A stretch of DNA of 64,000 bases from Vitrella brassicaformis CCMP3155 (GCA_001179505.1 CDMY01000459.1:8222-72221); one strand, 5' to 3'. Shown: positions 4,062 to 63,767, numbered from the stretch's first letter. The notes: generated from the letters alone by a model not told the origin. Made by a program: numbers and translations.

Positions 4062-4471
4062 GTGAGTGGCAGTGGCAGTGCATGCATGTGAGGCAGGGGT
4101 CTGTACGTATACAGCGTTACATACATACATATGTTTACAGCATCCTGTGGCCCTCGACAGGGCCGGTCGACAGGTCACTTGTATGTATAGCAGTCCCTAT
4201 GTGTCTTTGGGTTGGTTGGCATCGCATTTCGTTCTCTGATGCTTGCATGTTCAAGTTGTTGACGAGTGAGGGATGAAGACCATCTGAGTAGTAGACAGAT
4301 TTAAGCATTCAATCGATGCATGCACTCAGGGCCTATCGCAGCTCAACCTCGGCTCCCATTTGGTTAGTGCAGATCTGCAGAGGGGATTGAGGCCCATCGG
4401 CATTTGCCATTCTAAACTTGCAGATCCACACCGATCTCCCCCTCTCCCCACCAATGCTTCCCTCCAGATCT

Positions 4472-7400
4472 ATGACAGGAGGTTGTCAGCTGCTGGCCGC
4501 TGCCCTCCTACTGGCCGTCACGGCAGTCCGTGCACAGGTCAGTGATGTGTGCGAGTTGCTCGAGTCAGGCAGCAAGGAGCTGACCCTCAACAAGACCAAC
4601 GTGCATTGGGGCTTCTTCGACAACACCCTCGAGCCCAAATTGTGCGTCAAGAAAGCGAAAAAGCACGGCATGTGTTGATCTCGTGTGTGTGTGTCTGTGC
4701 GTCAGGTACGTCAAGAGTGGGGATGAGGTGACGATAGAGATGGCCACACACCAGGCGTGTGATGACTGGGACAAAATGATCGGTACGTACAGCACTCTTC
4801 CCGTGGGACACGGCAGCGAGATCTGGCGCTCATGTGGGTGTGCATGCAGGCGATGACGAGGGTCTACGATCTATCTATGACTGGGAGACCGGCATTCCCT
4901 TTGCCGACCGGTTCGCCACGCACATCCTCACCGGGCCCATTGCCGTCTGCGGCGCAGAGCCAGGCGATGTCCTGCAGGTACCGCAACTCAGTCGCCGTCA
5001 TATCGACAAACGTGCTGACGTGGCTGTTGGTAACATGTTGTGTGCAGGTGGAGATCATGGATCTGCAGCCAAGGCCAGGCCCCAACGGCACATCTTATGG
5101 CAGCAACATGGGCGGGTACGAATCACTCACTACCATGAGTGAAAGACTACGGCAAACTGGACAAGCTCAGGGAGATTGCTTGCCGCTCACATTATTCAGA
5201 TTTTGGGGCTACCAGTACCGTGTGTTGAATCGTGAAGGAGAAGTCTGGAAGGCCGGCGAGAGGACAGGGCACGAAGACGAGCCTGATGAAGAGTTCATCG
5301 CCATTTGGTACACCCATCCACCCACCCTTTCACCCACCCACCGCACACGTGTGAGAGTCTCGTGTATGTATCTTATGTGTTTGTGTGCAGGAGGCTGAGC
5401 GAGGAGAACGGCACTTGGTTCGGGGAGCTGGACTACATGTTCGACTACCCATCAATCATTGACCCGACAGGGCGGGTCTCCACCTTCCGAGTCAAGCCGG
5501 GCAGCTGCGTCGCTCACACATATGAGGGCTTCTCTGCCGTGGTGCGCATGCACTGCACGGACGTACTTTCATGGATGGATGGACTGATGTCCGTGTGTGT
5601 GTGTGTGTGTGCGTCAGCCGCAAGAGATGGGTTTTGACACGGTGGCCCCGATCAACTACACCAAGGACGCACCCCCATTCAGGATCAAACTCAATCCGCA
5701 CATCGGTAGGTTGCCCAGCCACCCAAGACGCCCCACCAACACCAACACATGGCTGCCTGTCTGTCTGTCTGTCTGTCTGCGCACAGGCAACATGGGCCTG
5801 GCGCCTGACTATGAGGGTAAGGTCAACTCAGTGCCGCCGATGGCCTCGGGGGGGAATCTCGATGACAAACGCATCGGTCCCGGCACCACCATGTACTATC
5901 GAGTGGAGGTGCCTGGCGCCCTGCTCTCGCTCGGGGATGCACACGCGGCACAGGTACTCTCATCAACCACATGTGCCAGAGAGAATGAGAGCCGCATGCA
6001 CTTGTGTGGGTGGCTTGGTATGGTGTCTGCCAGGGCGATTCTGAGCTTGACGGGACCGGGGTCGAGACGAGCATGACGGCAAAGCTCAAGATCACGCTGC
6101 TCAAGCAAAGTGAGGGTCGATACTTTTGACGCCATTCGGTCGGTGGTCGCGGTGGACCGTGTGTATGTGTATATGTGCATGTGTATGTGTATGTGTGTGT
6201 AGATGAGCTGCCCTTGTGGCTGGTCAACATGGAGCAGCCGATCGGGGAGACAGCCGACGAGTACATCATCCACTCATTCACGCGCAGGAACTTCCTTACC
6301 GAACTGGAAGACCCCAACACTGACGTCTTCCAGTAAGCAGGGGCACGTGTGTGTAGATATATATGTGTGTCTCTGGTGACCCCTCCTCCCGCCCCGTCTC
6401 TGTCCCTTTCTCTGTGTCGTGTGCAGAGTGTCCAACTTTGACGACGTCATGGCCAACACCCTGCTCACGGTCCGTAATTTTCTGATGGACCGGTACGGTG
6501 TCGCCGAGCACGAGGCGCCCGACATCATCTCGCTCGGTGTGAACTTCGGCGTCACCCAAGTGGTCGACGGCAACTGGGGCGGCCACGCACTGGTCCCCAA
6601 GAGCATCTTCCCGCCGTATGAGGGCTTCAAGGGCTTCACAATCCCCGAGCAGGAGCCCGGCGGTGAGTGAGCCACCACCCACCGACCCACCCACCCACAC
6701 ACACACACCCCGACACATCCGTCGTGAGAACAATCTTCTGTCTGTGTGTTTTCCTTCCCATCAGCCGGCCTTGAGCCAGTGGTGGTTGGCCCTGTTGACG
6801 CCGATACAGCCGAGGAGGGCTGTGCGGTGCCGCGCGGCTACAAGGAGCTGCCTCTCACATTCGACAGTGTGGGTGCCTTCGGGTTCTGGAGCAAGAACAT
6901 CAAGCCCCGTCTGTATGTGCACAGTGGGGACATGGTGCGCTTCGAGACGGCGACCCCCCTCGGCTGCAGCGATTGGGACCACGTGAGCATACGCACACAC
7001 ACCCACGCGCTAGTGGCTGGCTGTGATCAAGCGGATTTCTGTGCGTGCAGATCTCTAAGGGCGACCCGCCGATGGAGGCCATCTTCAAGCGTGACGGTGA
7101 TGGCACCCCGCCCCTGCAGAAGGACGGCCGCATGTTCCCGGAACACCTTGGGCACGTCCTCACTGGGCCCATTTACATCTGCGACGTGGCGCCTGGGGAC
7201 ATCGTCAAGGTGAGAGCGAATCATGACAGATTGACAAACAGACAGACCGCTACACTGCACACCAATGTGTGTGCGTGCGTGTGTGTGTGCGTGTGTGTGT
7301 GTTGTGTGTGTAGGTTGAGTATCTCGACATGAGGCCGCGCGTGAACCCTGCGGGCAGGATGTTCGGACTCTCCGACGGGGTGTTCATCGGCTACCAGTTC

Positions 7401-8982
7401 CGCATCCCCACGCGTGACGGCCGCACCCTGGTCTGGCCGCCAACAGCCGAGCTGAGGTCCGACTCTTGGGGCAGTCTCTGGTCAGCACTGCGCCTATGCA
7501 CAAACACTTTGTGCGACGATCGGGCCACGTGTGTGTCAGGGAGATGAAGCGAGACGAGAGCGGCGGCTACTACGCCGAGCCCGAGCACTTTTATCAGTAC
7601 GAGGTGGTCACGTCGCCCACCAACCAGACTTTGTATGATTTCGAGTGGTGGTGCACTCCACACAACTACCCCAACAGCAGCGGAGACGTCCAGTCGTGGT
7701 CAGCAAAGGCGAAGCATACACACGAGGAGGGAAACTTCTCTGTTTATGTGCGTGTCTGTGTGTGTGAAATGCCGATGTGTGTGCAGGGGCTGGTCCTCGA
7801 AAGAGCTGGAGTACCTCCCTCCCTCCGTCAAAGTGAGTGCACACCAATCACTGCACCCACACATGAACACGCGACCCGGGGTGTCTGTCTGTCTGTGTTG
7901 CGTCCTCAGGTGCGCATTCCCCTCCTGCCGCACTTCGGTTGCTTCGGCCTGGCCCCCGAGACCTACCCCGAAGGCGACGACAAGATCAACAGCATCGCGC
8001 CCATCGGCCGTGTCGGGGGCAACATGGACGAGAGGCTGTGGACCGTCAACACCACCGTCTACCTGAAGGCAGAGGTGCCGGGGGGCCTCTTCTCGGCTGG
8101 GGATGGCCACGCTGTGCAGGTGGGTCGGTGAGTGAATGAGTGAGGCAACCAGGGAGGGAGGGAGGGAGGCAGGGGTGAGAGATCTCTCGGCCATGTCTGT
8201 ATGTGTGTGTCGGGATGGATGCATCAGGGTGCGTCTGAGTTGGACGGTACTGGCCTGGAGGTGTCCCTTGACGGCACCGCCATCTTCACCGTCATCAAAC
8301 AAGGTACGTACGTCATGTATGTAATCGAAGAGAGAGAGGGAAAGTCTATTAGAGAGAGAGGACACTAAACAGCTGCGTGTGCTGCCCTCTCTGCAGGCAC
8401 CCCTGAGTATGACAAGGCTATGGAGTCCCTCGATGCCCCACTCGGCGAGACCGACACACACTGGATTTCCCTGGGCCTCTCTGTGGAAAACTACCTCGGT
8501 CGGTAATCAAACAGGCAGAGGCACGCACAAATGTCCCCTAAAGTGTGTTAGTCTAATCGGTCGGTTGGCTCATCAGAGCACTTTGCTGCCAACGGCGAGG
8601 GGGCCGACCCTTTTGCTGCGCTGGCTGCCGTGACTGGGTACAAGCCTGACGAGCCCGACGGCGGGCTGGAGGACGGCAGTGGGCCGGAGGGCAGATATGG
8701 CGCAGTCAGGAACACCTACATCAACGCACGCAACTTCGTCATGGTGAGGGACGGAGGGGGAAACAAAGGAGGAGAGACAGTGACACAGGGCTCTCTCTGT
8801 GCGTCTGTCTGTCTGCCTGTGTGTGTCAGGACAAGTACAACCTGAGTGAGAAGGAGGCCCTGGCTGCTCTGACGGTGGCGGGCGACATAGCTCTGACCGA
8901 GGTGGTCGACACAAATATGGCCATGCACTACAAGATCGACAAAGGCATCTTCGACGGCATCGTGCAGCAGAGGCGGCAGTAG
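4472..8982 (+). CDS. Secreted acetamidase/formamidase-family (FmdA_AmdA) protein with two tandem catalytic domains, ~21 exons
   Basis: Signal peptide MTGGCQLLAAALLLAVTAVRA. Domain 1 motifs: HWGFF, HILTGP, GAEPGD, GGNLD, GDAHAAQ|GDSELDG, TQVVDGNWG. Domain 2 motifs: FGFW, HVLTGP, APGD, GGNMD, GDGHAVQ|GASELDG, TEVVDTNM. TAG at 8980-8982. Confidence 0.95.
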
Positions 8983-13203: not shown

Positions 13204-13369
13204 TTGCACACACCACCCTCCCGCCCTTCCCGGCTTCCTGGCGGCGGCTTCTCCGATCGCCTCGTATGCGAGCTTAAAAGACGACGAGAATGGAGCAGTG
13301 GTATCAGGTTGTGAAGAGATCTGGCTGAGGTGCGAATAAGAAGACGGAGTCGAGCCTCAAGAGAGAGGA

Positions 13370-18230: not shown

Positions 18231-18372
18231 AACCTCACCTTCTGTCCCTTTCGCTTTTTTCCTTGCGAAAGCTTCTTGCCTTCCTGCACCTGCGAGCTTA
18301 GCTACGGATTTACCTGTGGCGAGGCGCTTGGAGCCATCCCCTCTGATCTAAAGATGCGGAGCCCTCGACAGA

Positions 18373-21300
18373 ATGTCCGACGCCAAGGGCTCAGGGAGAG
18401 CAGGAACGAGCGCTGAGGACAGAATGGCCATCATCCTCCAGTGCAAGAACTCTCTGCCGCCCTTTCTCCTCTACGCCTTACTCATCCTCCATGCTGCCCA
18501 TGCTGCCGCGTCAGCGCGCTCTGTGGCCGTCCGAGCAGTGCACGCTCATCAGCATCCACACGCCAACTTCACCCTGCTGACCAGCGTCGAGGCCCTCCCA
18601 GCCGGCCCTTCATTCGACAGCAAAAAGGCTCAGGACATTGCCGAAGCGGAGGCGGCGAGGACAGAGCAGCTCTTCCACGGCCTTCTCGGCGAGCGTGAGG
18701 TGGCCATCGAGGGCTCTGTGCTGCAGCCGGCAGCCAAGTCGGCACCGCAGCGTGTGGCGGCGGCTGACAAGGCGACCCGTGAGGCGGCCACACTCGCCCA
18801 GGCAGAGGCTGCAGAGGCTCAGCAGGCGGCCAGAGAGTTCGATGAGTCGCTGCGGCAGGACCGATTGGCCCGACAATGGGGAGGCGGCGGTGGCCGGGGG
18901 CGGTGGAGGGACCGTGAGATTCAGGTGCTGTCTGCCGGCACGACCAGGGACGTCTTCAACCCCGCTCTCGTCTCCCTCAGTGACCTGTCGGCGGCTGACG
19001 TGCAGTCGCTTGTGGGTGCCGCAGGGGGGGCGGGAGCGGCGTCGGACGGCAAAAAGGCAGCGTATGTGGTGGCGCTGCGGTCGCAGCTTTTTAACCGGAA
19101 TGTCTGGTGTGACTCTCATGTCGTTGTCGGCTTCCTCGATGAGTCCTCCGACAGATCGGTGACCTTCAGGTGAGAAGAAGAAATGATGTGCATGATCGAC
19201 TGACATGGTGCCTGCCTGCCTTTTGTTTGTGTCTGCAGGTGCTGTCTGATGACGATTTCTGGGGCCCTGATTTGCCCTACGACTGCGCCGAGACCAAGCG
19301 GATCACGATGACAGGCCCTGACGACCCTCGCCTCATTCTGCTCTCCAAGCGCCTCACAGCAAGGAATAACACAGAGGAGGGGAAGGATTTGTGGCTGCTG
19401 TTTTTCGGCCGCGAGCACCACCGCACCCCCAATGTGCCGTGTGGCGAGCATGGCCAGCAGCCGTACCTGGTGAGGCTCTTGGTGGAGGCCTCGGCTGTGC
19501 CTCAGTGGCCTGCAAGGATAGCGGTGGACAGCAAGAGCATGATGGCACTCAAATACGACAAAGCCACGCCGGTAGCCGCAAAGAAAATGGCAGGGGACAG
19601 GGGGGAATATCTTGCCTTCTTGTCTATTGTGTGCAGGTTGAGAAGAATTGGAGCCCCTTCGAATATCCTCCGCCCCTCCCGGCCCACAGCCTCCCACCCA
19701 TCTCTCTCTCTGCGTCGGCGTCCCGGCTGCTGACAGTCTACAGCATCGAGCCCCACATCGTCTTGCAGATCGACCCACACACAGGCACCACCACCGCATT
19801 CGCCAACTCGTCCCATCCCTTTCTCCACCAGTGGGCCAACGCCGCGAGAAAGTACCAGGACGTCAGCTCCTTCGTGGTCCACGGCGGTGCCGGGGTGGCC
19901 TTTGTCGCACCATCCGCAGCCGACGACCCCTATTTCCTCAGTGTGTTCCACGTGCTGACGAGCGGGGCCAACCCACTGGAGGGCGGCGCCATGGAGACCA
20001 TCTATCAGTCGTTCTTATACAAGTTCCGCGCCACGCCTCCTTTCGACATCCTTGCCATCAGCCAGGAGCTGCCGCTCCACCGATCTCAGTGCGGGTGGGG
20101 CGCATGGGAGGCCTTTCCCGTGTCGATCAGTGTGCGGCGTGGCGACAAAGGCGACAAAGGGGACAAAGGGGACAAAGGGGAAGGTCCTCGTGTGTGGATA
20201 TCGTATGGGAGCGGCGACAAGCAGAACAGGGTGTTTGATGTGGGACTGGAGGAGTTGGAGTCGCACTTCTTCCAGGAGCCGGTCGACATCGGCGGACCGC
20301 CACAGCTCGTCGGCACCGCCATGGGAAGTAAGCACACCGAAATGTGTCCTGAAAAATGCCGCTATCTATGTTGCGTCTCTTCTCTGCTGCACATACAAAA
20401 AGGCGAGTGGCGCTTCCCAGCCCCCGCAGTGCCACCACCGAGATCAGCACAGCAGCCGCAGCCACCGTCGCAGCCCCACACAACGAGACACAGGCGGCCA
20501 CAGCCACCGTCGATGCGCTCGACAGCATCTACAGCGACACCCACACCATCTACATGGGGGTCCCCAATTACCAGCCCGGCCAGAAGAGCATCAGCAAGAG
20601 CCTCAAACTGCTGCAGAGAAAGAGACAGAGACAGAGACAGAGGGGTGGGGGTGGGGGTGGGGAGAAGGTGACGGTTGTGATGATGGCCCATTTGCGTGCG
20701 AGGCTGCCCGTGGTGCTGGACGTGCTCGACCGGTACAGACAAATGCCGCACCTCTTTGGAGAGATCCTACTCGGTGAGATAAAGAGGGGGGGAGGGAGTT
20801 GCGAGCATCGAGGCAGCAACCCCCCCCCCCTCTTCACTTTTGTGTGTCCGTGTGTGTGTCAGTATGGAACAACCAGACGGACCGGCCTCTGAGTGACACC
20901 CAGGACCCGTTTGGGCGGCACTTTGGCGATATTCAAAGGACGGAGGGCTCCGTGCCTATCAGACTGATCAACGCAGAGAAGAACTCCATGAACGTGGGCA
21001 GGCAGCCAGCCCGGCAGACCCACAGCCACTACACCCACACACTAAGGTGTCTCTTCTCTTTTCTGGCAGAACCGATTTGCCGTGTGGCCGCTAATCAAGA
21101 CACCAGGCGTCCTCATACAGGCTAGATGGATGGATGGATGGATGGATGGAGGACGAAGGCCATGTCGTGGTCTGAGAATGTGAGCATGTTTGCCCTTGTT
21201 TGGCAGGACGATGACATGTGGCTGGAGGAGGCCGACCTGCGCTGCCTGGTGGACGCCTGGTGGGTGAAGATGAAGATGCATGGCTCTCGACGCTGGCTGC

Positions 21301-22114
21301 TCTGTGAATCCGATGCTTGTCAGGCGGGCACACCCTGACCAGCTGATTGGGGCCTTCATCGAACGTCTCGACATCAACAAAGGTGGCTTACTTGATGAGA
21401 GAGGAGACACCTCTCTCTGTGCCTCTCTGTGTGGTGAGTGCGTGCAGACATGGACGAGATGGCACTGCATTGGGACGAGTGTGCGGCGGAGGAGAGGCCC
21501 GTGTGCCTCATGGGCAGGAGCTACTCGATGCTCCTGCCGCACCCTTGGCTCATCAAGACACAATACCTCCACGAATATACCAACCACCCGTAACACCCCC
21601 CCTCCACCCCCCAACAGACAGACAGACAGACAGACGGACAGACAGAGAGAGACACGGATGCCCTCCCTTCTTCCCTCCCTCCCTCCCTCCCTTTGTCTGT
21701 CTGTGTGTGTGTCTGCTCAGCGCCATGACCAGTCTGGTAGACTCGCTCTTCAACTGCGACGACCTCTACACCAACGCCCTCGTCACCTACGCCACCTCCC
21801 TCCCACCTCTCGCCGTCAACGTCACTGTCCACCGCTCACCCCTATGGGCACAGACACAAGGAGGGGCCATGTGGGTGCTCGACACTCGATGGAGGGAGCA
21901 TCGCCGGCAGTGCATTCAGAAAATCAACGACTATTTCTTGTCAAAGCCTGTGTTGGCGAGTGTGGGCAAAGCGGCGGCTCAGAGGCCAGTGGTGCTGCAT
22001 GGTGGTGATGGTGGTGGTGGTGGTGTGGTTGTTGACACTGGGACGGTGTTCAAGCGGTGGAGCCGTGTGGTGGAGTGTGCTGGGGGGAGGGAGCCGCAGA
22101 CGCCCGTTGGCTAG
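18373..22114 (+). CDS. Secretory-pathway fusion: five-bladed beta-propeller (GT91 beta-mannosyltransferase/GH130-like) + C-terminal GT64 (EXT/EXTL-type) glycosyltransferase
   Basis: Hydrophobic N-term segment. Propeller motifs FNP, GPDDPRL, EKNWSPF, VHGG, VFH, YQSFLYKF...PPF, AFP, SYGSGD. GT64 motifs EILLVWNN, NSMN|NRF, IQ|DDD, AWRAHPDQLIG, YSML, NCDD, HRRQC. All junctions splice in frame. Confidence 0.9.
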
Positions 22115-23462: not shown

Positions 23463-23499
<37 letters not shown>

Positions 23500-24269: not shown

Positions 24270-24398
24270 GGGGTGTGCTGCAGCGGAAAAGGGCCGCTTC
24301 ACACTCTGCGACTGCGAGCTATGGAGTTAGGGCTCTGTTTAACTGAACGGTAAACTCTCTCAGGAAACAGAGTGTTTGGACACGCGAGAGGAGATCCC

Positions 24399-24714: not shown

Positions 24715-24758
<44 letters not shown>

Positions 24759-27510: not shown

Positions 27511-27648
27511 GGATTCGCGGATCTGCGGGGCGGTGGTGACTCCACATTCCATCAATGGTATGCTGCTCAGGAAAAAGGGGGAGGGCGAATCGGCTAAGCT
27601 TGCAGATCTCGGCGATCCCCGTTTTGGAGGGACTGCAGAGCCAGGAGG

Positions 27649-29975: not shown

Positions 29976-32013
29976 ATGCTCCCCGCTGCCACAGCCCTCC
30001 TGCTTGCCTGCCTGCTGCTGGCGCTGCCAATTTTGTGTCCTTCTTACCCGGCAGCAAAAGCGACCAGCAGCAGCAGCAGCAGCAGCAGTGACCATGATGA
30101 TGATGAGTCGGTCACTGAGGTGCTGTCCGACCTGCTTGACTTCCTGCAGACCACTACAGACGAGAGGGATGGCACTGCGGGACAGAGTGAGGGCAGCGTG
30201 AAGCGCCTGTGCCGCCCGATAAAGGCGGTGGAGCCCTTCCTCAACTCAAGCGAGACCGTCGAGGTGACGCTGGACCTCGACGCATACGTCTTCAGGTACC
30301 TGGAACACACTCAGCCCGTTCGTTCGTTCTGTGTGAGAAGTGTGGTTGTCGTGTCGTGTTGGTGCAGAGGTCTGCTTCCGGAACCTTTCGCCGCCCTTGG
30401 CGATGACGCGTTCAGGGGAGGGACGGTGCTGATCGGGGAGCCGCACATCGACTATCGCTCCTATGCCCCTCTCGCCCACCGGATGACGGCACGAGGGGTC
30501 GAAATTCGGGTACGTACGTACGTGCTAACGACGATGGCTGCAGACAGACAATGCCCCTCTCTGCTTATGTGTGTGTGGGCAGGGAGGTGTCCCCGTTGGC
30601 CCGACCCTCATCATTCTGCCGCCCTGCACACCGTGTCTGGACAGGCAGTCGTATAAGAAGGCGCCTTTGCCCTGCCAGGCGTGTGCCGGGCTCATTGTGG
30701 AGCTGCTCAACAGATATGAGCTCGACACCTGGGCGCTAATCGGTGTGGGGGAGGGGGCACTCGCCGCGTCCATCTTCGCCGAGACCCACCATCCACGAGT
30801 CAAGGCAAGCGCGATATGTCGGTTGAGACGTTTGCTCTGTTGCTGCGTCGATTCAGGGCCTGTCGCTTATCGCGGGCTATCCGGACAAGAGTGTCGATCT
30901 GGTGGCCAAGAACATCCTGGTCCAGGTGTTTGCGGGCGACGACGACGAGGTGTACCCGGCCAGAGAGATCGCCAAGAGGCTGGATGGGCTCCCACTGGTC
31001 AGCTTTAGATGGCTGCAAGGACAGACAGACAACCCGCCCGCGCCCTGTCTGTGTTGTGTGTGCAGGAGACGCTGTTTGAGAGTTTCGCCAACACCACGCA
31101 CGAAGACTTCTCATGGTCAGAGGTGCCCTGCGATCCCGAAGAGAGAGACGTCCCGCTGCTGCTGGCCAAAGACAAAGCCGAGTTCGCCCCCAACGCCCGG
31201 CTCGCCACTCGCGACAACATCACCCACACCATGATCCTGGGGACCTTCTCCACCACCTTCTACCACAACATCGTTGCTTTGGAGTTCGCCGAGGCCAGTC
31301 TGATGATCCACGAGAACCTTGCAGTGGAATACGACTCATTCCCCCACTCTCGACTCGTGGACCCTGCCCCTGCTGAGGGCGACGCGTCTGTGTCACCGGA
31401 GTGCATTCTCTACTGCCCAGGGCCAAAGATATGGGTTGCGGGGCTGTCAGCGATGATCTTTGGCTTGTACTACGCCGAAGTGACGGTGCCTGGGCGGGAT
31501 TGGCTGAACGATGAGTCTTCTCTGAACGAGGGAGACGGCGTGACGACGAGGTTTGATGAGGAGTTCAGCTGGTGGGTCTATGAGGGGCCGAAGCCTTACA
31601 AGGCCGGGCTCATCTTCTTTATCGGGGCTCATGTGCCGCCTGAAGCTTACGCCGTCCTGCTCAGGTCGGGCTGCGCACACAGATGTNNNNNNNNNNNNNN
31701 NNNNNNNNNNNNNNNNNNNNNNNNNNNNNNNNNNNNNNNNNNNNNNNNNNNNNNNNNNNNNNNNNNNNNNNNNNNNNNNNNNNNNNNNNNNNNNNNNNNN
31801 NNNNNNNNNNNNNNNNNNNNNNNNNNNNNNNNNNNNNNNNNNNNNNNNNNNNNNNNNNNNNNNNNNNNNNNNNNNNNNNNNNNNNNNNNNNNNNNNNNNN
31901 NNNNNNNNNNNNNNNNNNNNNNNNNNNNNNNNNNNNNNNNNNNNNNNNNNNNNNNNNNNNNNNNNNNNNNNNNNNNNNNNNNNNNNCCCCCTCTCCCCCT
32001 CTCTCTCTCCCCA

Positions 32014-33730: not shown

Positions 33731-34030
33731 NNNNNNNNNNNNNNNNNNNNNNNNNNNNNNNNNNNNNNNNNNNNNNNNNNNNNNNNNNNNNNNNNNNNNN
33801 NNNNNNNNNNNNNNNNNNNNNNNNNNNNNNNNNNNNNNNNNNNNNNNNNNNNNNNNNNNNNNNNNNNNNNNNNNNNNNNNNNNNNNNNNNNNNNNNNNNN
33901 NNNNNNNNNNNNNNNNNNNNNNNNNNNNNNNNNNNNNNNNNNNNNNNNNNNNNNNNNNNNNNNNNNNNNNNNNNNNNNNNNNNNNNNNNNNNNNNNNNNN
34001 NNNNNNNNNNNNNNNNNNNNNNNNNNNNNN
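33731..34030. other. Assembly gap (300 N) flanked by poly-C
   Basis: Run of N between C homopolymers. Confidence 1.
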
Positions 34031-40933: not shown

Positions 40934-41135
40934 CGTTCATCACCCAAGGCTTTTTGGATCCGAAGAAGCGAGCTTTTCTTTGTGCTGCGAGCTTTGTGTT
41001 GGAGAAGGCACCCGTCACTTTGAGGGAGTTTTGAGCTCACGTACGAACAGCCGGAGGCACCGCCGTCGAGTTTTTGTGTGTTTTGAGGACAGATCGGGAT
41101 TGGTGCACCTCACTAGGCGTGTTGCGGTTGTGAGG

Positions 41136-41378
41136 ATGATGCTGCAAGTGGCGTCAGTCATGTCGGGTGAGAGCGGTGGCCTGGTGTCCCGGATGGACAG
41201 CGACTCCCTCCTCGTCGACCTGTAAGCACCACCACAAACCAACCAACGCCGACAGAGCAGACAGACAGACAGACACATAGACAGACAGACAGGAGGGAGG
41301 AGAGAGGAAGGCCAGATCTGCAGCAGCAGCAGACAAGGGCAGATTGATGTGCCTGCATGTCGATGTCATATTGTTTGA

Positions 41379-44215: not shown

Positions 44216-44247
<32 letters not shown>

Positions 44248-44716: not shown

Positions 44717-47390
44717 ATGGTGGTCATCAGGCGTCCTCCCGTCACCCTGCTCTTCTTCATCGCAGCTGCCGGCCTCAGTATCGCAGTTGACCAAACCGTG
44801 GACTACATCAACACACTCTCAGCTAGCAGTAGCAGTAGCAGCAGCATCGTCAGCCATGCCGCTTCGATGCCTGCCTTCCCCCTGCAGCACTCCGTGCCCA
44901 TCCAGGCGGCATGGTTCTCGTGCAGAGAGCCCCGGATCTCTGGCGAGAAGAGGGCTAACACCACTGCCGCTGACGGGGAGCGGCGTTCTGCGCAGCGCAA
45001 CAAGAGCGGAAAGAAGAAGAACACTAAGGGGCAGCAACAGCAGCAGCAAGGGCCACGTGCTGCAGAAGCGGACGCCACTGCTGTGGCTGCACGTGACTTT
45101 GCCCGGGCGCTGTCCTACATGGGCAGCTCCGTTGCCGACCACACATGGGAGGTTATCGAGGTAGGTACACAGACAGGTATGGATGGAGGGATGGATGGAT
45201 GGATGGATGGAGGCGATCGTCGTCTTTCCAGCCAGAGATAGTGATTGGTCTGCACGTCATGTGTGTGTCTGTGTGTGTGTCTGTCAGGAGTTTGGGACGC
45301 GGATGCTGCTGCTCCTGTTGGCCCTTGGGGTGATCGGGACAATGGCCTTTCCGGCCGTGGCGTGGGTGGCAGATGGTTTGAGAAACAAGTGAGCGAACCA
45401 TACGCACACACGCAATTGTGGACTAGGCAGCGATATAGTGATGCGAGCGACTGCCCATGTGTGTGTGTGTGTGTGTATGTGTTTGTGCGCGTGTGTGTGT
45501 GTGTGTGAGTGCAGCCCCGAGCAGGTGACTTTTGATAATTTCTGCGCAGCCGTCTACGACATCTGGTACGACTTCGTCTGTGTCAAGCCCTACCGCATCG
45601 CCAGACGGCTCCTACTCGCTGTCCTTCACATCTTCCTGGCACTCGTCGAGGGCGCCGCGTGGCTAATCGGCTTCGTGTGCAAGCCCGTCCACACGTGGGT
45701 GTCGGCCAAGCGGGCCGAGATGATTGAGAACGACCTCATCAACGAGCAGCGGCAGGAAGCCGCCGGCATCGTGGGAAGGGAGCTGTCGTCGAAGGACAAG
45801 TACGTGAAGCGCCGACGAGAGCAGAAGAAACGACGCAGACAGCGAAAGCATCTGGAGAAGCTGGCGGCCGTCCAATCGGCGCCACCCAAGCGATCGCCGG
45901 CGCCTTACGTGCCGATCACGCCCGACGACCACGTCATGACTGACGATGGGGCGGTGGTGGTGCTACGTCAGGACCACATCGACCACGAGCACATTGACGA
46001 CGGCGAGTGGAGCCGAGTGGGGGCCAAGGGCAAGAAGGTCAAGCAGCAGCCGGCCCTCAGCAATGCTGCCACGACACCTGAGTCAGACCTGCCCAGCCAC
46101 GGCGAGCCTGGTCATAGGGAACAAGGCGGCATGACGGTGGCGGCCGAGAAGCCGCACCTTGTCAAGGGAGCGGCGCATGAGCCCTCTAGCGACCGTCCTA
46201 TCATCCCCTACCCCACCCCCACCCTGCCCCCCGCACCACCTGCGCCACCAGTACAACCACCAGTCGCCCCGGCCCCCGTGGAGCCTCCCGTCACGTGGAC
46301 GCCGCCGGCCGACATGCCCCCTGTCCCCATGCCACCCAAGGCCCCCAAGGAGCCTGTCGCGCCGGTTCCAGTGACCAGGAAGAAGGCACCCAAGGCACAG
46401 CCGCAGCCACCGCAGAAGCAGCGGGGCAATTTGCAGCAGGGCGCGTTTCGCGACACCCCACCGGCACCACCCGTGCCGCCGCAGCCGCAGCCGCAGCCAC
46501 AGCCACAGCCACAGCCGCAGCCGCAGCCCGCGTCGCAGCGTTCGGGTATGGGCATGGGCGGGGGGCATGTCGACGAGGGGCAAAAGCAGAGCGGGCCCAA
46601 ACCAGCAGCAGCAGCAGCAGCAGCGGAGGGAGAGGGCGACATCGACGAGTTTGCCGAGTTGGAGGAGGCATGGAGGAGCGGTGCTGGCGGTGGCGGTAAG
46701 CTGCCATCGAGTACACCGAAGCCGCAGAGACCCAGGGGTGAGCGTACGCCCAACAAGCCACAGACCTCTTCACTGGCGGCCAAGGAGTCTCCCAAACAGC
46801 ACAGCACGGCCAAGAAAGGCTGGCGGCCCGCACTGCGTCCAGCTCAGCAGAAAGGTGGTAGTGGCGCATCCGGTCACGTCACGGGCAGCCCCTCTTCGTC
46901 GGCTGTGGGGTCGGTGTCCCATGTGGCTGGTGAGGGGGCCGCCAGTGTGCAAGGGGAGGGGGCGGGTGTGGGTGGGGGGAGTGGGGCGGCTAGTTTGACG
47001 ACGACGACCACGAACCACGAGAATGCTGCAGAGGGTGAGAGGGGCACACGGGATGGATGGATGGATGGGCTCCCCCACTGTGTTTGCGTCTTGTGTCAGG
47101 TGAGGTGTTCTCATGGCAGTGCAAGGTGTGTTACTCCAAGCAGGCGACGTGCCTGTTTATTCCCTGCAAGCATCAGCTGGCATGCGACGACTGTGCCAGG
47201 GTCAGCGACCGCACCGTACCGCACCAACGCCCTACCCCCCTCTCTCTGATGTGTGTGTGTCTCTCTCTCTGTGTGTGTGTGTGTGTGTGTGTGAGGGTCT
47301 TTTCAGGACCTGGAGGCGAACTGCAGCCCGTGTCCTTATTGCCGCGAGCCTATAGCGCAGTTCATATACGGTATCATCATTCCTGGCTAG
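44717..47390 (+). CDS. Membrane-anchored RING-HC E3 ubiquitin ligase-like protein
   Basis: Signal peptide, two hydrophobic segments, Pro-rich tract, C-terminal CKVC...PCKHQLACDDCAR|...CPYCREPI; TAG at 47388-47390. Confidence 0.85.
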
Positions 47391-47396
47391 ATCACA

Positions 47397-47696
47397 NNNN
47401 NNNNNNNNNNNNNNNNNNNNNNNNNNNNNNNNNNNNNNNNNNNNNNNNNNNNNNNNNNNNNNNNNNNNNNNNNNNNNNNNNNNNNNNNNNNNNNNNNNNN
47501 NNNNNNNNNNNNNNNNNNNNNNNNNNNNNNNNNNNNNNNNNNNNNNNNNNNNNNNNNNNNNNNNNNNNNNNNNNNNNNNNNNNNNNNNNNNNNNNNNNNN
47601 NNNNNNNNNNNNNNNNNNNNNNNNNNNNNNNNNNNNNNNNNNNNNNNNNNNNNNNNNNNNNNNNNNNNNNNNNNNNNNNNNNNNNNNNNNNNNNNN
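47397..47696. other. Assembly gap (300 N)
   Basis: Run of N. Confidence 1.
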
Positions 47697-49103: not shown

Positions 49104-49587
49104 TTGTGCTCCAGATCTTGCAAGCTCTGTGGTCAAAATAATGGACCCCTCCTCGGCGGCTCTAAGCTCGCAAACCCTAGACCCCAACCCTAATATTCTG
49201 GGGGAAATAATGGGACACTTTTCCCATTATTCACCATCTTGCGAACAGCCCCGTCGTATGGTGGACTTGAGCTCATCAAGGGACCAACAAAAGTGCCGCA
49301 ACTGCCCAGGGCGACGACAGGCGGTCGGCGCGGAGTCGTGGCAAGCGGAGCGCGCAGATTCGACGAGGTTTGCGGGGCCGCCCACAGGACGGGGCCGCGA
49401 GCGAGGATGGGGTGCGTGACGACAAAGGAGCCTCAAGAGGAGCCTGGCGAGCAGCCCAGGACGTCCGGGCCCCCCCGCGTCACACAAATCACCACCAAGC
49501 AAGGTGAGGAGGGAAGGGGCCCGTACAGAGGCAGAAATGATGCCGCATGCGAACTGAGGGTTGTGTGCGCGTGGCACTGGTGTGAGC

Positions 49588-50203
49588 ATGGTTCAGACTT
49601 TGAGGAGCAGGTCAAGAAGGCCGAGGCCTCCAAGTTGGTCGTAGTCGATTTCTTCGTCCACCATGCAAGCACATCTCGCCGAAGGTTGAAGCAATGAGTG
49701 GCGAGTTCACGGACGTACTCTTCTTCAAAGGTACACACTGACACACCGCACACGGCATGCCTTGCAGTGTGTCGTGTGTGTCGTGTGTGTTGTGTATGCA
49801 GTTGACGTGGACGAGGTTGCGGACCTGGCAGAGCACCTCGGGATAAATTCCATGCCGGTACGTTTGGAGAGATGGGAGGGGAACAAGGAGTGAGGGAGAC
49901 AGGTGCGGTCGTTCACTCATGCATGAGGCTCTGCTCTTTGTGTTGTCTTGTTGCAATGCATCTGCCTCAGACATTCCAATTCTGGAAGGTGAGCTCATGG
50001 ACTAAACACGAGCGCCGTGCAGTATGGCATGTGTGTGTGTGTGTATTTGTGTGTGGTCACTCACTCATGCAGAGCGGCCAGAAGCTTAAGAAGGCGGAGT
50101 TCTCGGGCGCCAACGAGAAGAAGCTGCGGTAAGGGATGCCTGAGCCAGTGCCTCACCTGCCGCCATGTGTGTTTGCAGGAAGTTGATTCAAGACAACAAG
50201 TGA
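49588..50203 (+). pseudogene. TRX: Thioredoxin with two frameshifting deletions, one removing the active-site Trp
   Basis: DFEEQVKKAEASKLVVVDFF / CPPCKHISPKVEAMSGEFTDVLFFK|VDVDEVADLAEHLGINSMP|TFQFWK|SGQKL..FSGANEKKL|RKLIQDNK*. Reading frame breaks at 49591-49596 and 49656-49657. Confidence 0.85.
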
Positions 50204-50672: not shown

Positions 50673-53031
50673 CTAGTTTTGCTCTCCCATGTCCCTTTCA
50701 GACTGTTCACCCTCGCCCTCCGTTGGCTGTCGCCTTGCCCCAGCCATGACTGGCAGGTTGGCGAGCGGGGACGGTAGCGACGGCCCAGCAATACACGTCG
50801 ATTGGTATACGGTCATCGTCCTCTGGATTCGCGAGAAATCCGACGCGCAATCCCCGCTAAGAGGCGTTACAGACGGGGGAGCCGCTGAGGAAGAGGAGAC
50901 ACGTGAGCACGCATATGTAGTTAGCGTTATCTTTGTGCCGCTCGTACGTGTCATGTTGGTTGAGGTTGATTCAGAAGAGTCCTCCTCCCTCTCTTGGACC
51001 TCTTTGTGCCTGTGTATCCTTCCCTCCTTCCGTCTGCTTTTTCTGTGGCCACTATGTGTAGACTCGAGCATCATCGATCCGCCCACGTGAGCGCGTCTCC
51101 GTCGGCTTCTCTGCTCGCTCCGCTGTTCAGTCAGAGCTGAGGGCGGTACAGGAGGAGGCCAGCTGACGGTATATGCCTCGATGCCGCTGGAGGATGATGG
51201 CCTGTCGTTGCCCTCCTGAGGTAGCTTGTCTCCTGTATCGTTGCTGTTTGGTTCGTCTTGGTCGCCGTCGTTTGACGCGGATGGCTTACTGACATCCTCT
51301 GTCGACGGATTCTCGTCTGCAGAGTGTGTCCAACCTGAGGATGATATGCACATGGCACGATCTGTGGTGGCTCACCAGCCTCCGATTCGTTCAGTCGTTG
51401 AAGGGCGGCGTGTCGCTGTAGCAACTCCTCCTTGCCCAGCTCATCATCTGGATTAGTCGGCGGGATAATCTGGTTGGCCTTCGAAGCAGCAGAAGCCTTC
51501 GCGTTCTTGCGCTGGTGGGCGTTGAATGCTGCAGCCAAGCACAAATATACACTGCCCGAGGGTGTGTGTTGCGAGAACTGGCTTACTGATGTATATGTTG
51601 TCGCCATGCCTAATAGCCACGGAAGAGTCCGGCCGGGGGTGTTTTGGCCGCGGCTTTGGTTTGGGCGGCGGCGACCCCTCCTGGGGCTGCTGATCTTCAT
51701 CCGTCTCGTCTTCTGCGGGTGGTGCTGGTGGCTGTGGGGTTTCTTCGTCTTCAGCTTCCGGCTCCTGCTCGATCTTCATCAGGTCCGTCAAGGAATGCTG
51801 CACGCACACGAAATGTTCACACGTAACGCGATAAAGAGCATGGTGTCTCTCGTTCTCACTGGTATGGGTTGCGTCGCCTTCTTGTGGGCGCCTTTCTTGT
51901 GATGGCTTTCTTGTCCCTTCTTCTTGTGATGCGAAGCTTTCTTGTGGGGTTTGTGAGACGGCTTCGCCGCAGGAGTGAGGCGGCTCTGTTGCAGATGGGA
52001 CGAAGCCCCTCTGGTCGCGTCCTGCTTGTCTTGGTCATCAATGGGTGCATCGTCCACTGGATCGGGCGGCTGCTCGTCAGAGACCTCTTTATCAGCAGCC
52101 TGACATGCACATTCACGTAGACGAGGGACCGACACAACGCAGGCACACACACGCATACGGAACGACGGCTGCGATGCACCTGATCTGCATTGGTCGATTC
52201 TTCCCCCTCGGCCTCTTCCCTGTCATCAGCATCATCAGCAGCAGCAGCCGAGTGTTCATCTTCACCGCCGGTGCTGTCATCTTGGTCGCCGCTTGGTAGC
52301 ACAGGTTCTCGCCGCCTTGCCCCTTGCAAATGCGAGGAAGGAGCAGAGCGCTGCGACGGCGGGTCACGGGCGACAATCGCGCCTTCAATGGCGGCCAGCT
52401 TCCTCAGCACCTGCATTCACCACACCCCACACCATCCCACAAACAGCGTCCCATGCAATCGCTGGTGTCTCCCTCACCGACCGCATCTTCGTTGGGGTCA
52501 TCATCAGAACTTGCGCCGTTGTCGTTGTTGTCCTCTTGGCCGCTGTCACTCTGGGAGCTCTCTCCTTCTGTGTCGCTGCCATCAGGACCGCCCTGTGCTG
52601 GCTTGGTGGAGCCTGGCGGAGGAGCCTTCGCTGAGTGTGCGTTGTCAAAGAGATTGTACCACTGCAAAGAGAGGCGCATTTAAGGAGAAAGGAGAGATGT
52701 GTGGAAATGCCTGGATCCGGAGCTTTCATGCACGTACCTTGTGCGAATGTGTTTGTGACGGGCCTGACACACAGAGGTCGCATTGCGACTCAACACTCTC
52801 TCCCCTCCCTCCCCTCGTTTGCCCACCGTCTGTTTTCTTCACATCTTCATCGCCTGCAATGCCGGCATGAGCCCCAAGGCCCGGCCTGGCCCTTTGCACC
52901 TCCCCCAGATGGTCGACCACAGCCTGGGGCGCTTCGTCATTCCTTCGTGTTTCCTGCTGCGGCAGACTGAGTGCAGAAGCACTCATCAAGAGAGCCCAGA
53001 GCAGCACTCTAGCAGACCAACTCATGAGCAT
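50673..53031 (-). CDS. Secreted low-complexity acidic protein with a His/Lys-rich tract
   Basis: Signal peptide MSWSARVLLWALLMSASALS; D/E/Q/P-rich exons; KPSHKPHKKASHHKKK tract. 3' exon structure uncertain. Confidence 0.55.
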
Positions 53032-53057
53032 CCAGACTTCACATGATCGCCTTGCTT

Positions 53058-53070
53058 GCTAAGCTCGCAG
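53058..53070 (+). promoter_or_regulatory. Example of the recurrent upstream motif GCTAAGCTCGCAG; other copies at 13267-13276(-), 18290-18302(-), 24312-24321(-), 27593-27605(+), 40985-40995(-), 49162-49172(+), 63652-63661(+)
   Basis: The same core AGCT(C/T)GCA is seen directly in eight divergent intergenic spacers. Function is inferred. Confidence 0.65.
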
Positions 53071-53099
53071 ATGCCCGAAGAGATCTCCTTCTTTTCGGC

Positions 53100-54429
53100 A
53101 TGAATTCCTTTTGCAGCGGCGTGCGCAGCCTTGCTGGGGGCATGGCTGCCACGAGCTCTTGCGTCGCATCGCCGTCGGTACCCATGGCCCTCGAGCCGGC
53201 AGTGTATCCCTGTCTGATGATGCAGCAGCGCTTCAAGAGGAAGAAAAAGCGCAAGAGGGAGAGGCCGCACCCCACCGAGGAGCAAATCGAGACTAAAGCG
53301 AGGTGTGTCAGACGAGAGATGAGCCTTATGACTGACTGACGGGCGTGTGAATGATCTGTCTGTTGTGGATGGGTGAAGGGTGACTCCGATACGGCTGGAG
53401 GATCACCTTGGCAACCCTGAGCCTCCCTATTCTATTGCCAAGAACATCCGGCGGTCGATAGCTCGAATGGCGGCCGGCTGGAAGAGGCGGAGCGATTTCA
53501 GACGAATGAACCGATACAGGGTAATTAAGTACATAGACAACGGCCACGCTCCCCTGATGCGATGCCTTACTTTTGTGGTTGGTGCACTGCACTGCACAGG
53601 TGCTGAGTGCAGTGGGTCTGACGCACGACGATCCCGAGGAGAAGGTCAGCCGGGAGGGCTTCGTGACGCCTCTCACCCAGCTGCAGCACAACGCCCACCT
53701 TCCCAGATCCACACGTACGCACGTGTAGTGTGCGGTGCGGCTGACCTGACCACACGGCAGAAGCGAACAGGTCAGACAACCGACGGTTGTTCTCTGTCGT
53801 GTCGTGTGTTGGCCGGGCAGTGCATGCGAGGTTCCGTTTCCCCCACACACTGCACTACAAGGCTCGGTGGGGCCCTCCAGTGACGGAGAAGGAGCCTCAT
53901 GTGTACCAGTGTGTGGCATCCATGAGGCTCGACGACCTCAACCTCACGGAGAGGTGGGTGGCATCGCGATCATCGTAACCACACACTCGTAGACGTTGTC
54001 TGTGTGTATGTGTGTTGATCTCATTTGTGTTGTGTGTCGGTGCAGGCAGGAGAAGAGGATGCTGGACATACTGGGACCGCTGCGGTGAGTGAGTGAGTGA
54101 GTGAGTGAGTGAGTGACGAGAGAGAATGATATCACACATCGGTAGAGATGGCTGGCTGTATGTATGTATGTATGTATGTGTGTATGTTTTTATGTGTGGA
54201 TGTGTGTTATGTGTGTGTGCAGGTATGACCCCGCCACTCGTATGGTGATTCTGGAGGCTGACGCATTCCCGGACAGGAACCACAACGCCGCCTATCTAGG
54301 TGGGTGGCTGTTGCACCAACACCACGGTGGTACTTCGGCACAGCCTTCATCCGTCACGTCGTGTGTGTTGTGCTGTGTGTGTCAGGTGATATCCTGGAGG
54401 TGCTGATGAGAAAGGCCAAGAAGGCGTGA
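53100..54429 (+). CDS. MRPS35: Mitochondrial small-subunit ribosomal protein mS35 (MRP-S28 domain, Rsm24-like)
   Basis: ARFRFPHTL...MRLDDLNLTE|RQEKRMLDILGPL|RYDPATRMVILEADAFPDRNHNAAYL|GDILEVLMRKAKKA*. All 7 exons join in frame. Start at 53100 preferred over 53043. Confidence 0.85.
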
Positions 54430-60700: not shown

Positions 60701-60744
60701 AGAGAGACCAAAATGAAGGGAAGCTTGTGATTCAGTTGTTTTGA
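54786..60744 (+). CDS. Polycystin-1-like protein: helical/GAIN region, GPS autoproteolysis motif and several TMs; apparent frameshifts (possible pseudogene)
   Basis: TCGYF...QWSTEG|CYH...CHCFHL/SEFG (GPS); TM VVLVLLILAAWWD; RCLIGGAVLLGLLMVTAALF; WAMIIAKPV; GFLLAFLWWTWCIYF; LIGHLLLQPL. Frame breaks near 55930-55975, 56205-56220 and 56955-56960. Confidence 0.75.
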
Positions 60745-61516
60745 CACCCTTGTGTGCAACGTCACTTGATTGGCGCCGCAAGTTTCATGGCGGGGTGTGA
60801 TGGGTGTGCTGTGATGCATCGTAGAATTGATTCGATAGCCGAGGGGTAGTTTTGAGTACTTCTGCTACCGTAGTTGATTCGGCACAGGAAGGGCATTGGT
60901 AGTCTCCGCTACAAAGGAAGCCTGCTGCTGTTTTTATGTAGAGGTGAATGACTATGTATGTCTTCACTGCACTCGCGATAAAGCTCATAACCTGCACATT
61001 GCTTCATGCACTGGCGCCAATGCGCGAGCAGGCCCTGTCTCGATCGACGAACTGACCGAAGCATGGTTCTCTCTCTCTCTCTCTCTCTCTCTCTCGCGTG
61101 TGTGTGTGTGTGTGTGTGCCGGGTGGGTGGAGGGTGCCATGGGGAAGATATGTGTATGTGTATGTGTATGTGTGTGTGTGTGTGTGGCCTGGGGAGCGCG
61201 CCTTTCGACGGGGTGGACATGGATAAGGCAAGGATAAGGGGTCGGGTGTGCCTGAGTCTGTCCATGAGCCTGCGTGTGTTTTTTTGAAGGGACAAGCCTT
61301 CTTCTTCGTTGTTGATGAGGCATGCATGCGACGTACAATGCCTCACAAAGACAAGATCCATTTGCTCACTGACATTTCGATGTCGCGGCAGAGGCAGCCA
61401 TGAAAATGTATCAGCCATCCATGTCAGCACACACATATACACCCCACACACATCGATGCCGCACGAACACACAGTACAGGTCAGTGAATCAATGAATGTG
61501 TGAAGCAATGAGTGAA

Positions 61517-63456
61517 TCAATGAAGCAGAGCAGAACTCACCAGCTCGTCATTGGTGAGGAACGATGCGTTGGTCAGCCTGCACCGGTCGTTGCTGTAGTC
61601 GATGGCGCGTGCTGCCCTCCCCCCTATCAGCGCTGCCGATGCAGCCGCCAACGCCCCACGCCACAGTCTTCTTCTCCGACGGCCCCTCTCGGCCCAGGAA
61701 CTCCGAGTACTCGTCGCTACCTGATCAACACACACACACACACACACACACAAACAGACAGACTGACAGATCGACAAGAGCCAGGGGTCTGTGCAGTGTT
61801 GTGTTGCGTACCTCCGTTGCCCTCTTGTCCGTCGTTGGGATCCATATCATCGTCATCGTCATCGCCGCCACCAACGTCTCCATCTGCACCATCCATCCAC
61901 GTGTGTGTGTGTGTGTGTGTGTTGCTCTCTCCCCACCGTCATCGTCGCCATAGTCGTCACCCTCACTCTCATCAACCCCGTCCTCATCTACACCACACAG
62001 ACAGAGAGGGAAGGCACATCCATCCATCCATCCATGTGTGTGTCCCTCCCTCTATCCCTCCCTCTGTCTTCCGTACCATCGTCGTCACTGTCGTCGCCCC
62101 CCTGCTGCTGGGGCTGTGGCTGTGGCTGCTGCGGCGGCTGTTGTCCGTCGAACACGTGAGGCCCCACAGCCTCCAGCACCACACGAGCCAGGGCGGTCGT
62201 CTGGGGGAAGCGGTCCTTGAAGGCACCACCCTCACCAGACACAGGCGCCTCGGTCGTCCACACACTCACCTCCACTGCAGACACACAAGGAAGAGAATGT
62301 TAGTGGCACGTGACCAGCAGAGCTGCCTGTCTGTCTGTCAGCTTGACCGATGTTTGCGTAGTCGCCGAGGTGAATCCATGCGACGAAGTTGTGGGTGCTC
62401 TTGGTGAGCACCAGGTATCGCAGAGGACGACCGTGCTGGCGGCTGAACGTGGTGCTGCATCCCGCCACCGGTGTGTGTGGCGACTGGCTGAGGAGGGCAT
62501 CCAGACGGCCGCCGCCAACATACCTGAACCAACCACACCAGACGCGCACACAATCAGACACGCACCCCTCTCAAACACAGTGCCATCGGTGGGTTTACCT
62601 GTCGAGGAGTCTCCATGTGCGATAGGTCTTGTGAGTGTGGTCGAAGTGGTCGAGGATCAAACGCTTGGCGCACGACGACACCGACGCATCGGTGAATCGC
62701 CCCCCACTCCGCCATATGCCGCAGCGCTCCCAGTAGTGGATGTGGCTACGCACTGGCGGGTCGTCCTGTAGTCGGTGTTGCCGGTACGGGTGGTCGGGGA
62801 AGAGGGGCGGGTCGACCTCCAGGTCGAAGTCGGGCTCGTCATTGATGGCCCGCACCTCGTGGCCATGGCGGAACAGCTCCAGCCGGCTGCTGTCAGCGAA
62901 GTCCACATGACGCCCCACCACCATCAGCTGCGTTACCACACGGGGAAGCGACATATACGCCTACACACACGACAATACACACAGATGAGCAAATGAGGCC
63001 CTTTCTTGCCCTTCCTCCCTCCCGCCCTGTGAGTCCCACCGTCTTGTCGGCGTGTTTGTTGATGTCGGCAGCAGTGAGGTTGACGGGCAGCGTGCAGCGT
63101 CCACAGTGGCTGGCCCACCGCAGCACCTCAGCCACCTCCTCCCACCTCTGCTGCTCCACCATCCACATGGCCGCCAGCAGCAGCCGCGCCTCGGTCACCG
63201 ACTGCGGGTCGAAGGCCAGCACGGTGTCCAGCGGGGTCCCATCGGCGAGCCGAATGCGATGGAGTGACCAATTGAGTCGGCTGCGGAGCGTCTGGGAGTG
63301 GTCATTGCCGACGTAGAGCGCTGCAGTCCTGAGGCGGCCGATGTCCTTGGCCTCGTCGTAGAGCTGATATCTGTCGTCGCGGTGAATGAAGTCAAGGCAC
63401 TGGCCGTGGACGGACGGCGAGGCCTCGTCGCTGGTCTTCCGCGAGACGTTGCCCAT
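61517..63456 (-). CDS. Member of an expanded lineage-specific family resembling Vitrella unknown proteins; MG N-terminus
   Basis: Block HTPVAGCSTT...RYLVLT...FVAWIHL...VWTTEAP...FKDRFPQTTALAR...HVFD is recalled from chromerid hypothetical proteins, not database-checked. 3' exons uncertain. Confidence 0.65.
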
Positions 63457-63767
63457 CGCCCTCACTGAAAGGCTACTCAAGTGTCTGCATGATCACACAG
63501 ACACAACAAGATGCTGTTTGCCATGTGATGGTTCGAGGATGGATTTGGTGTGGAAGGCACCTGACCTACCTATGTATCGTGATGAGACGGATCCGTCTTC
63601 ATGCTCATGATCCCCTTCTCGCCAGCCCAACCTGCTGATCGCCTCGGAGTTGAGCTCGCAGTCCTAGCGAAGAGGAGAAAGGTAGAGGGGAAACGGATGA
63701 GGAGAAAGGAAGAGGGGAAAGGAGAGAGGAAGTGGAAGGAGACCTGCAGCCACTCTGCATCGTCCTG

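Follow-up and report, generated by a model that had tools for sequence, protein, structure and literature searches.

What is a short, conserved word doing between genes that point away from each other? The question is raised by a 64,000-nucleotide (nt) stretch of the Vitrella brassicaformis CCMP3155 genome (contig CDMY01000459.1 of assembly GCA_001179505.1; the whole stretch is referred to below as the window), in which a 12-nt motif, YTAAGCTYGCAG, recurs in the spacers between divergently transcribed genes. Chromerids such as Vitrella are the photosynthetic sister lineage of the apicomplexan parasites. A first-pass annotation of the window had suggested that the motif is either a core-promoter, initiator or transcription-factor site, or else an acceptor for splicing. 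The analysis described here supports the first of these suggestions: the copies are confined to 5′ spacers, and the ends of RNA contigs flank them closely. We put the probability at roughly 70% that YTAAGCTYGCAG is a promoter element acting at the DNA level, the core of very short head-to-head spacers, which marks the sites of divergent initiation by RNA polymerase II.

The motif and its copies

Alignment of the copies defined the motif unit as the 12-mer YTAAGCTYGCAG, with information content at background level directly outside the 12 nt. The 8-mer AGCTCGCA occurs exactly seven times in the window, at 13267(−), 18291(−), 24313(−), 40986(−), 49165(+), 53062(+) and 63653(+), and the degenerate form AGCTYGCA adds two sites, AGCTTGCA at 27597(+) and 49119(−); a further variant, CTAAACTTGCAG, lies at 4412(+). 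This word search recovered every copy listed in the first-pass annotation, and added the weak copy at 49118(−) that had not been listed. Over the whole window the words are in mild excess, with 7 copies of AGCTCGCA against 2.8 in shuffled sequences, and 9 of AGCTYGCA against 5.6. When the word was extended to CTAAGCTYGCA and up to one mismatch allowed, 7 matches were obtained against 1.16 expected, a number reached in 0 of 100 shuffles. A scan with a position weight matrix (PWM) yielded eight strong copies, scoring 16.6–20.5 bits, and two weak variants. Noise in the same scan did not exceed 10.9 bits, and the top noise match, at 44818, lies within coding sequence.

Motif positions 10–11 are occupied by C-A, a pyrimidine-purine pair, in all ten copies. 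The 3′ end reads CAG in seven of the ten and CAA or CAT in the other three. A global scan for over-represented 8-mers was uninformative, and a repeat search of window positions 1–4600 returned nothing relevant. Neither Rfam families nor tRNAs were detected in scans of the window, and the motif is therefore taken to be unconnected with small-RNA genes.

The ten copies are listed below. For each strong copy the two distances are those from the motif 3′ end to the sense ATG and from the motif 5′ end to the partner ATG, respectively.

13266..13277, minus strand: strong copy TTAAGCTCGCAT, in the AP3M / g13370 head-to-head spacer 13204–13369; NCBI AP3M ATG 13203(−), partner open reading frame (ORF) ATG 13370; 62 and 92 nt
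18290..18301, minus strand: strong copy CTAAGCTCGCAG, in the TYW1 / glycosyltransferase-fusion spacer 18231–18372; NCBI starts 18230(−) and 18373(+); 59 and 71 nt
24312..24323, minus strand: strong copy CATAGCTCGCAG, in the RPL8 / DEK_C spacer 24270–24398; NCBI starts 24269(−) and 24399(+), RPL8 identity from protein search, where the best match to one of its exons was RPL8 of V. brassicaformis CCMP3155, recorded at this contig only; 42 and 75 nt
27594..27605, plus strand: strong copy CTAAGCTTGCAG, in the RETICULATA-like / KCR spacer 27511–27648, with AGATCT directly after; NCBI starts 27510(−) and 27649(+); 43 and 83 nt
40985..40996, minus strand: strong copy CAAAGCTCGCAG, 5′ of an F-box gene (ATG 40930), with a probable divergent partner whose ATG, at 41136, has a GT donor after it; our own reading; 54 and 139 nt
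49162..49173, plus strand: strong copy CTAAGCTCGCAA, in the gene A / thioredoxin spacer 49104–49406; ATGs 49103(−) and 49407(+), ORFs from spliced RNA; 233 and 58 nt
53059..53070, plus strand: strong copy CTAAGCTCGCAG, in the gene C / mS35 spacer 53032–53099, within 34 nt free of RNA contigs; ATGs 53031(−) and 53100(+), ORFs from spliced RNA; 29 and 27 nt
63650..63661, plus strand: strong copy TTGAGCTCGCAG, 5′ of a methyltransferase-like ATG at 63768, with a probable divergent partner ATG at 63456; our own reading; 106 and 193 nt
4412..4423, plus strand: weak variant CTAAACTTGCAG (13.5 bits), 30 nt 5′ of the first in-frame ATG of a secreted formamidase (signal peptide), apparently in a tandem (head-to-tail) promoter
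49118..49129, minus strand: weak variant CAGAGCTTGCAA (12.2 bits), 14 nt 5′ of the gene A ATG, inside the transcribed leader of gene A

Location in head-to-head spacers

The DNA of the window is nuclear, intron-rich and gene-dense, with 50–63% G+C. Gene models independent of the motif covered 27.5 kb in total. Between 12638 and 34269 these were NCBI gene calls, from an annotated locus whose reverse complement matches the window with 0 mismatches over 21,632 nt; in addition to the starts listed above, they include that of an alpha/beta hydrolase at 29976(+). Between 48500 and 54400 the models were built from splice joints in RNA contigs, and four mRNAs were reconstructed. Over this interval the runs X1, X7 and X8 act as RNA, their contigs skipping 14 GT..AG introns, and run X6 acts as DNA, its contigs having no joints and keeping the introns. 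A strand map of splice-donor words was too noisy for gene models, and a coding-potential map from codon usage too weak. Three assembly gaps (31687–31986, 33731–34030 and 47397–47696) lie 1.4–6.1 kb from the nearest motif copy and touch no spacer used here, and none of our claims needs continuity across them.

Within the 27.5 kb, all seven AGCTYGCA words were found inside six head-to-head spacers. These spacers total 947 nt, in which 0.06 copies are expected (Poisson P = 6.7e-13), and the placement of the motif between divergent gene pairs, as proposed in the first-pass annotation, is thus borne out. All six of the independently annotated head-to-head spacers are occupied, as are two further ones, around the 40985 and 63650 copies, by our own reading. 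What had been missed earlier is that each head-to-head spacer holds essentially one strong copy, situated between the two divergent transcripts. The spacers measure 68–311 nt between ATGs.

Gene bodies and introns contained no AGCTYGCA copy, against about 5.6 predicted by shuffles for the window as a whole. Neither of the two tandem promoters checked (Abhydrolase, 29976(+), and polycystin-like, 54786(+)) carries one. Eight of the nine motif-bearing promoters are head-to-head spacers, and the single tandem case, at 4412(+), is a weak variant. The enrichment in head-to-head over other promoters that would be looked for in a bidirectional-promoter element is present here, in small numbers.

The motif had also been described as oriented, with each copy pointing toward a start codon. 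Six of the seven AGCTYGCA copies do have a same-strand ATG no more than 120 nt downstream (binomial P = 3.5e-9), and the sense ATG is nearer than the partner ATG in six of the eight strong copies, with one near tie. As a head-to-head spacer has a gene either way, the claim of orientation is weak; the motif tends to face the sense ATG, a tendency and not a demonstrated rule, and the earlier description was overstated to that extent. The start-codon distances reported with it agree with ours to within a few nucleotides for AP3M, TYW1, RPL8, KCR, the F-box gene, mS35, the formamidase and the methyltransferase. The 416 nt given for thioredoxin was wrong: RNA joints put the start of its ORF at 49407, 233 nt from the motif.

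RNA contig ends around the motif

Two of the motif-bearing spacers are covered by RNA contigs. In the gene C / mS35 spacer, the gene C contig (X7 record 14, minus strand, depth 162) ends exactly at 53041 and the mS35 contig (X7 record 15, depth 71) begins exactly at 53076, with the 12-mer at 53059–53070 within the 34 nt separating them. The mS35 contig starts 5–6 nt past the 12-mer and 7 nt past the A of GCA, so that a sense transcript begins within a few nucleotides of the motif 3′ end. The end of the gene C contig is 18 nt from the motif 5′ edge. Across the gene A / thioredoxin spacer, X1 record 1, the contig of gene A, stops at 49139, leaving 22 nt between it and the 49162 copy (23 nt to the 5′ edge of that copy), and a thioredoxin contig of low depth starts at 49235. 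The motif therefore lies between divergent transcript ends in two of two RNA-covered spacers (53041, motif, 53076; 49139, motif, 49235), and the strong copies at 49162 and 53059 are outside both of the RNA contigs that flank them. In each case the partner transcript ends 18–23 nt from the motif 5′ edge. No unmatched leader letters were present at 53076, 49235, 53041 or 49139 in the three RNA runs.

The DNA-like run X6 assembles through both RNA-covered spacers, and one of its contigs spans the gene C / mS35 spacer unbroken, from 52964 to 53535. Because the X6 contigs cross these spacers, the break in the RNA contigs at the motif is not an assembly artefact. The assembler also merges transcripts that do overlap, as the convergent 3′ ends of thioredoxin (gene B) and gene C are held in one contig. 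This contig, X7 record 14, contains a plus-strand GT..AG intron (50127–50178) followed by eight minus-strand introns, and the presence of introns of both strands in a single contig indicates that the two 3′ ends overlap. The divergent transcripts at the motif spacers cannot overlap much.

A model for divergent initiation

In the model that we favour, a sequence-specific factor or the basal machinery would bind YTAAGCTYGCAG, and from the bound motif two initiation complexes would diverge, nucleated a short distance apart. Sense transcription would start on the invariant C-A of the motif 3′ end or immediately past it, in the manner of an initiator, and antisense transcription about 10–25 nt upstream of the motif 5′ edge. 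The 5′ leaders resulting from such starts would be about 30–60 nt long for most motif genes. Toxoplasma start sites have C-A at −1/+1, and GCAGAAA and GCAGTTT are among the commonest start-site words (PMC2920756). Since the C-A of the motif matches this arrangement, an initiator-like role of the motif 3′ end is plausible by analogy; the pyrimidine-purine pair of an initiator is present in ten of ten copies, with its A as the putative +1.

A bolder extension of the model is possible, if on balance doubtful. One 12-nt element might be the whole shared core of ultra-compact bidirectional promoters, with both starts no more than about 25 nt away and about 35–45 nt from start to start. It might, in addition, serve the free-living Vitrella as its dominant promoter code, recognised by a factor particular to the lineage, and the parasitic apicomplexans might have lost or replaced it. 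In yeast, human and Toxoplasma, divergent starts flank a nucleosome-free region, one at either edge, and are much more widely spaced.

Several points weigh against a promoter role. The transcript 5′ ends are the ends of assembled contigs, from three RNA runs and two spacers, with good coverage of one sense start, and are lower bounds, so that the true starts may be slightly closer to the motif. The weak variant at 49118(−), which may be a chance near-match, is transcribed in the gene A 5′ leader (X1 record 1, to 49139), and a thioredoxin start at the 49162 copy would need a 233-nt leader with two upstream ATGs. The start codons assigned to the 40985, 63650 and 4412 copies are our own reading, and the orientation bias is not significant within the window. 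No factor is known to bind the motif, and the upstream region of Toxoplasma gondii RPL8, the one gene compared across species, contains no AAGCTCGCA-like word. The evidence as a whole comprises eight strong copies in one window, RNA data for two spacers and this single Toxoplasma gene.

Alternative readings

The motif could instead be the site of a general regulatory or boundary factor that keeps the spacer nucleosome-free or insulates it, with the starts set elsewhere. Reb1/Abf1-type factors have such a spacer-opening or insulating role in yeast, and typically sit roughly 80–100 nt from starts. A single, roughly central copy per spacer, irrespective of gene function (RPL8, TYW1, AP3M, KCR, mS35, F-box), would suit a factor of this kind, as would the weak orientation bias, and the word AGATCT, which is also enriched in the spacers, could then be the real start-site signal. 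We nevertheless regard a boundary role, the chief competitor of the favoured model, as unlikely. The contig 5′ ends are 5–23 nt from the motif on both sides, far closer than is typical of the yeast factors, and the conserved 3′ C-A fits a start site; the distances are also far shorter than the approximately 82 nt of the Toxoplasma gCATGCa motif (PMC7854901). Improbable, in our estimate, is an element of the transcribed 5′ leader that acts on the mRNA (in translation, stability or localisation) and has its start upstream. Such an element might well be directional and lie, as the motif does, 29–62 nt before six of eight sense start codons, and the weak variant at 49118(−) is indeed within the gene A leader. 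At the copy with the best coverage, however, the mS35 contig starts past the motif at depth 71, and the 49162 copy is outside both RNA contigs. In spacers of 68–166 nt, moreover, an upstream start would make the mRNAs overlap and the assembler would be expected to merge them, as it did the 3′ ends of genes B and C, yet the mS35 and gene C contigs (the latter at depth 162) are not joined, although DNA contigs cross the spacer.

The other suggestion of the first-pass annotation was a splice acceptor, either a spliced-leader trans-splice site or the end of an intron in the 5′ untranslated region, with CTAA as branch point and CAG as the acceptor. Seven of ten copies end in CAG, pyrimidine-rich sequence precedes some of them, and trans-splicing is known in dinoflagellates and perkinsids, which are related alveolates. 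The RNA contigs argue strongly against it. There was no joined leader or loose end at the four transcript 5′ ends in the three RNA runs, and a check for splice junctions ending at the motif AG found none, yet 14 ordinary GT..AG introns were recovered from the same stretch. The three copies that end CAA or CAT lack the AG that an acceptor requires invariably, and we consider splicing at the motif very improbable. A chance or compositional coincidence, or the remnant of a dispersed repeat, might be suspected from the whole-window count of the bare 8-mer, which is just modestly above that in shuffles. This reading is refuted within the window by the location statistics (P = 6.7e-13), the extended 11-mer and the clean gap in PWM scores, and its probability is negligible. 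A dispersed repeat or transposon terminus was ruled out separately, as the flanks show no similarity and information is at background outside the 12 nt.

Comparison with known promoter elements

Among the closest parallels are the GABP/ETS and Staf/ZNF143 sites of human bidirectional promoters (for Staf/ZNF143, PMC3082894). Like the Vitrella motif, these are single short words over-represented in head-to-head promoters; they lie between divergent starts and are tied to transcription both ways. The Vitrella motif is unrelated in sequence to the ETS site (CCGGAAGTG) or the Staf site. The Vitrella spacers are far shorter than the human ones, and the transcript ends are about 35–45 nt apart, in contrast to hundreds of nucleotides. 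The spacing around the motif, as judged from sequence and RNA contigs, is an order of magnitude tighter than that around the human sites. The motif may be functionally like the bidirectional-promoter factor sites, yet no member of that class.

The Toxoplasma initiator (tgINR) and the piroplasm initiator, with the consensus TYAYWWW (quoted in PMC4761415), share with the Vitrella motif a position close to the start site, TATA-less promoters and a pyrimidine-purine C-A. Classical initiators are degenerate and 6–7 nt long, whereas the Vitrella motif is 12 nt long, G+C-rich and of high information. Its conservation, in contrast to theirs, is mostly upstream of the putative +1, and it is found mainly at head-to-head promoters.

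A widespread promoter motif in the related lineage is the RY/ApiAP2-like gCATGCa of Toxoplasma, which is present in 44% of start-site windows whatever the regulation of the gene, with a peak about 82 nt upstream of starts (PMC7854901). The Toxoplasma motif is palindromic, whereas that of Vitrella is asymmetric, differs in sequence and lies about 5–23 nt from transcript ends. Identity with an ApiAP2 or RY-type element (TGCATGCA) was ruled out, since the Vitrella motif has no GCATGC core, is asymmetric and is too near the transcript ends. In Drosophila, Ohler Motif 1 (M1BP) and DRE are long, directional words near +1 of TATA-less housekeeping promoters, and are served by dedicated factors other than TBP. 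Both are unrelated to the Vitrella motif in sequence and lineage, and we know of no link between them and head-to-head pairs so tight.

Promoters, upstream motifs, start sites and trans-splicing are not discussed in the chromerid genome paper. Literature searches for the motif word or its reverse complement together with Vitrella or chromerids returned nothing relevant, and a search on the bare 8-mer returned primers only. The nuclear promoter architecture of chromerids thus appears to be unpublished, and the motif is most likely an undescribed, lineage-specific promoter element.

If the motif marks gene starts, it would allow start sites to be placed from sequence alone and the 5′ ends of Vitrella gene models to be corrected. 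It would offer minimal bidirectional promoters of about 70–170 nt for transfection tools, which to our knowledge are still absent for chromerids, and would serve as bait for the binding factor, be it ApiAP2, Myb or other. Vitrella promoters could also be compared with those of Toxoplasma and Plasmodium, whose layout is very different. Should the starts indeed sit about 40 nt apart around one site, it would have to be asked how so short a piece of DNA accommodates two initiation complexes.

RNA contigs for RPL8 of another chromerid, Chromera velia, were also inspected. In two runs they begin with AGATGGG, 2 nt before the start codon, either because the leader is extremely short or because the assembly breaks consistently at this point.

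Other words near the motif

The palindrome AGATCT occurs 26 times in the window, against about 10.5 expected from base composition. In promoter spacers it is enriched about 10-fold (12 against 1.25, both strands counted) and is the second most enriched spacer word. Copies in or beside spacers are located at 4371, 4466, 13317, 27604, 49113 and 53081. AGATCT directly adjoins the T-variant copies of the motif, in GCAGATCT at 27602 and GCAAGATCT at 49118(−), and a related word, GCAGATCC, lies at 4420. The palindrome is possibly a further promoter word in its own right, or else part of the promoter signal.

GATCGCC begins 14 nt (53045–53051) and 13 nt (63637–63643) upstream of the 12-mers at 53059 and 63650, respectively, and is found on the opposite strand at 13255, immediately downstream of the copy at 13266. 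Either chance or a role as companion element may explain it. Two telomere-repeat-like AACCCTA words directly follow the 49162 copy (49173–49192), reminiscent of the telo-boxes of plant promoters and 5′ leaders.

Neighbouring genes

In the thioredoxin gene (49235–49640), RNA joins 49501 to 49595. The ORF begins MGCV at 49407, which resembles a myristoylation signal, and is preceded by a leader of at least 172 nt with upstream ATGs. An X7 contig has 255 nt of unmatched sequence before 49595, the last 30 letters of which look similar, though not identical, to the end of exon 1; the stretch may come from a paralogue or an alternative first exon.

The ORF at 45438–47249(+), of 603 codons, had no relative among 1.84 billion representative proteins. 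A single match with E = 3e-4 was to its Cys/Val-rich start and is probably due to low complexity. The ORF is plausible as a coding sequence, and is either an unannotated protein or an orphan. No called protein is on record for the ORF at 62896–63456, and for the g13694 membrane protein no usable family emerged from an Atlas search.

The NCBI calls split 18373–22114(+) into an 854-amino-acid protein and a separate single-exon GT64 fragment of 129 amino acids (21725–22114). Neither a promoter-like spacer nor the motif is present between the two, and they are probably one gene.

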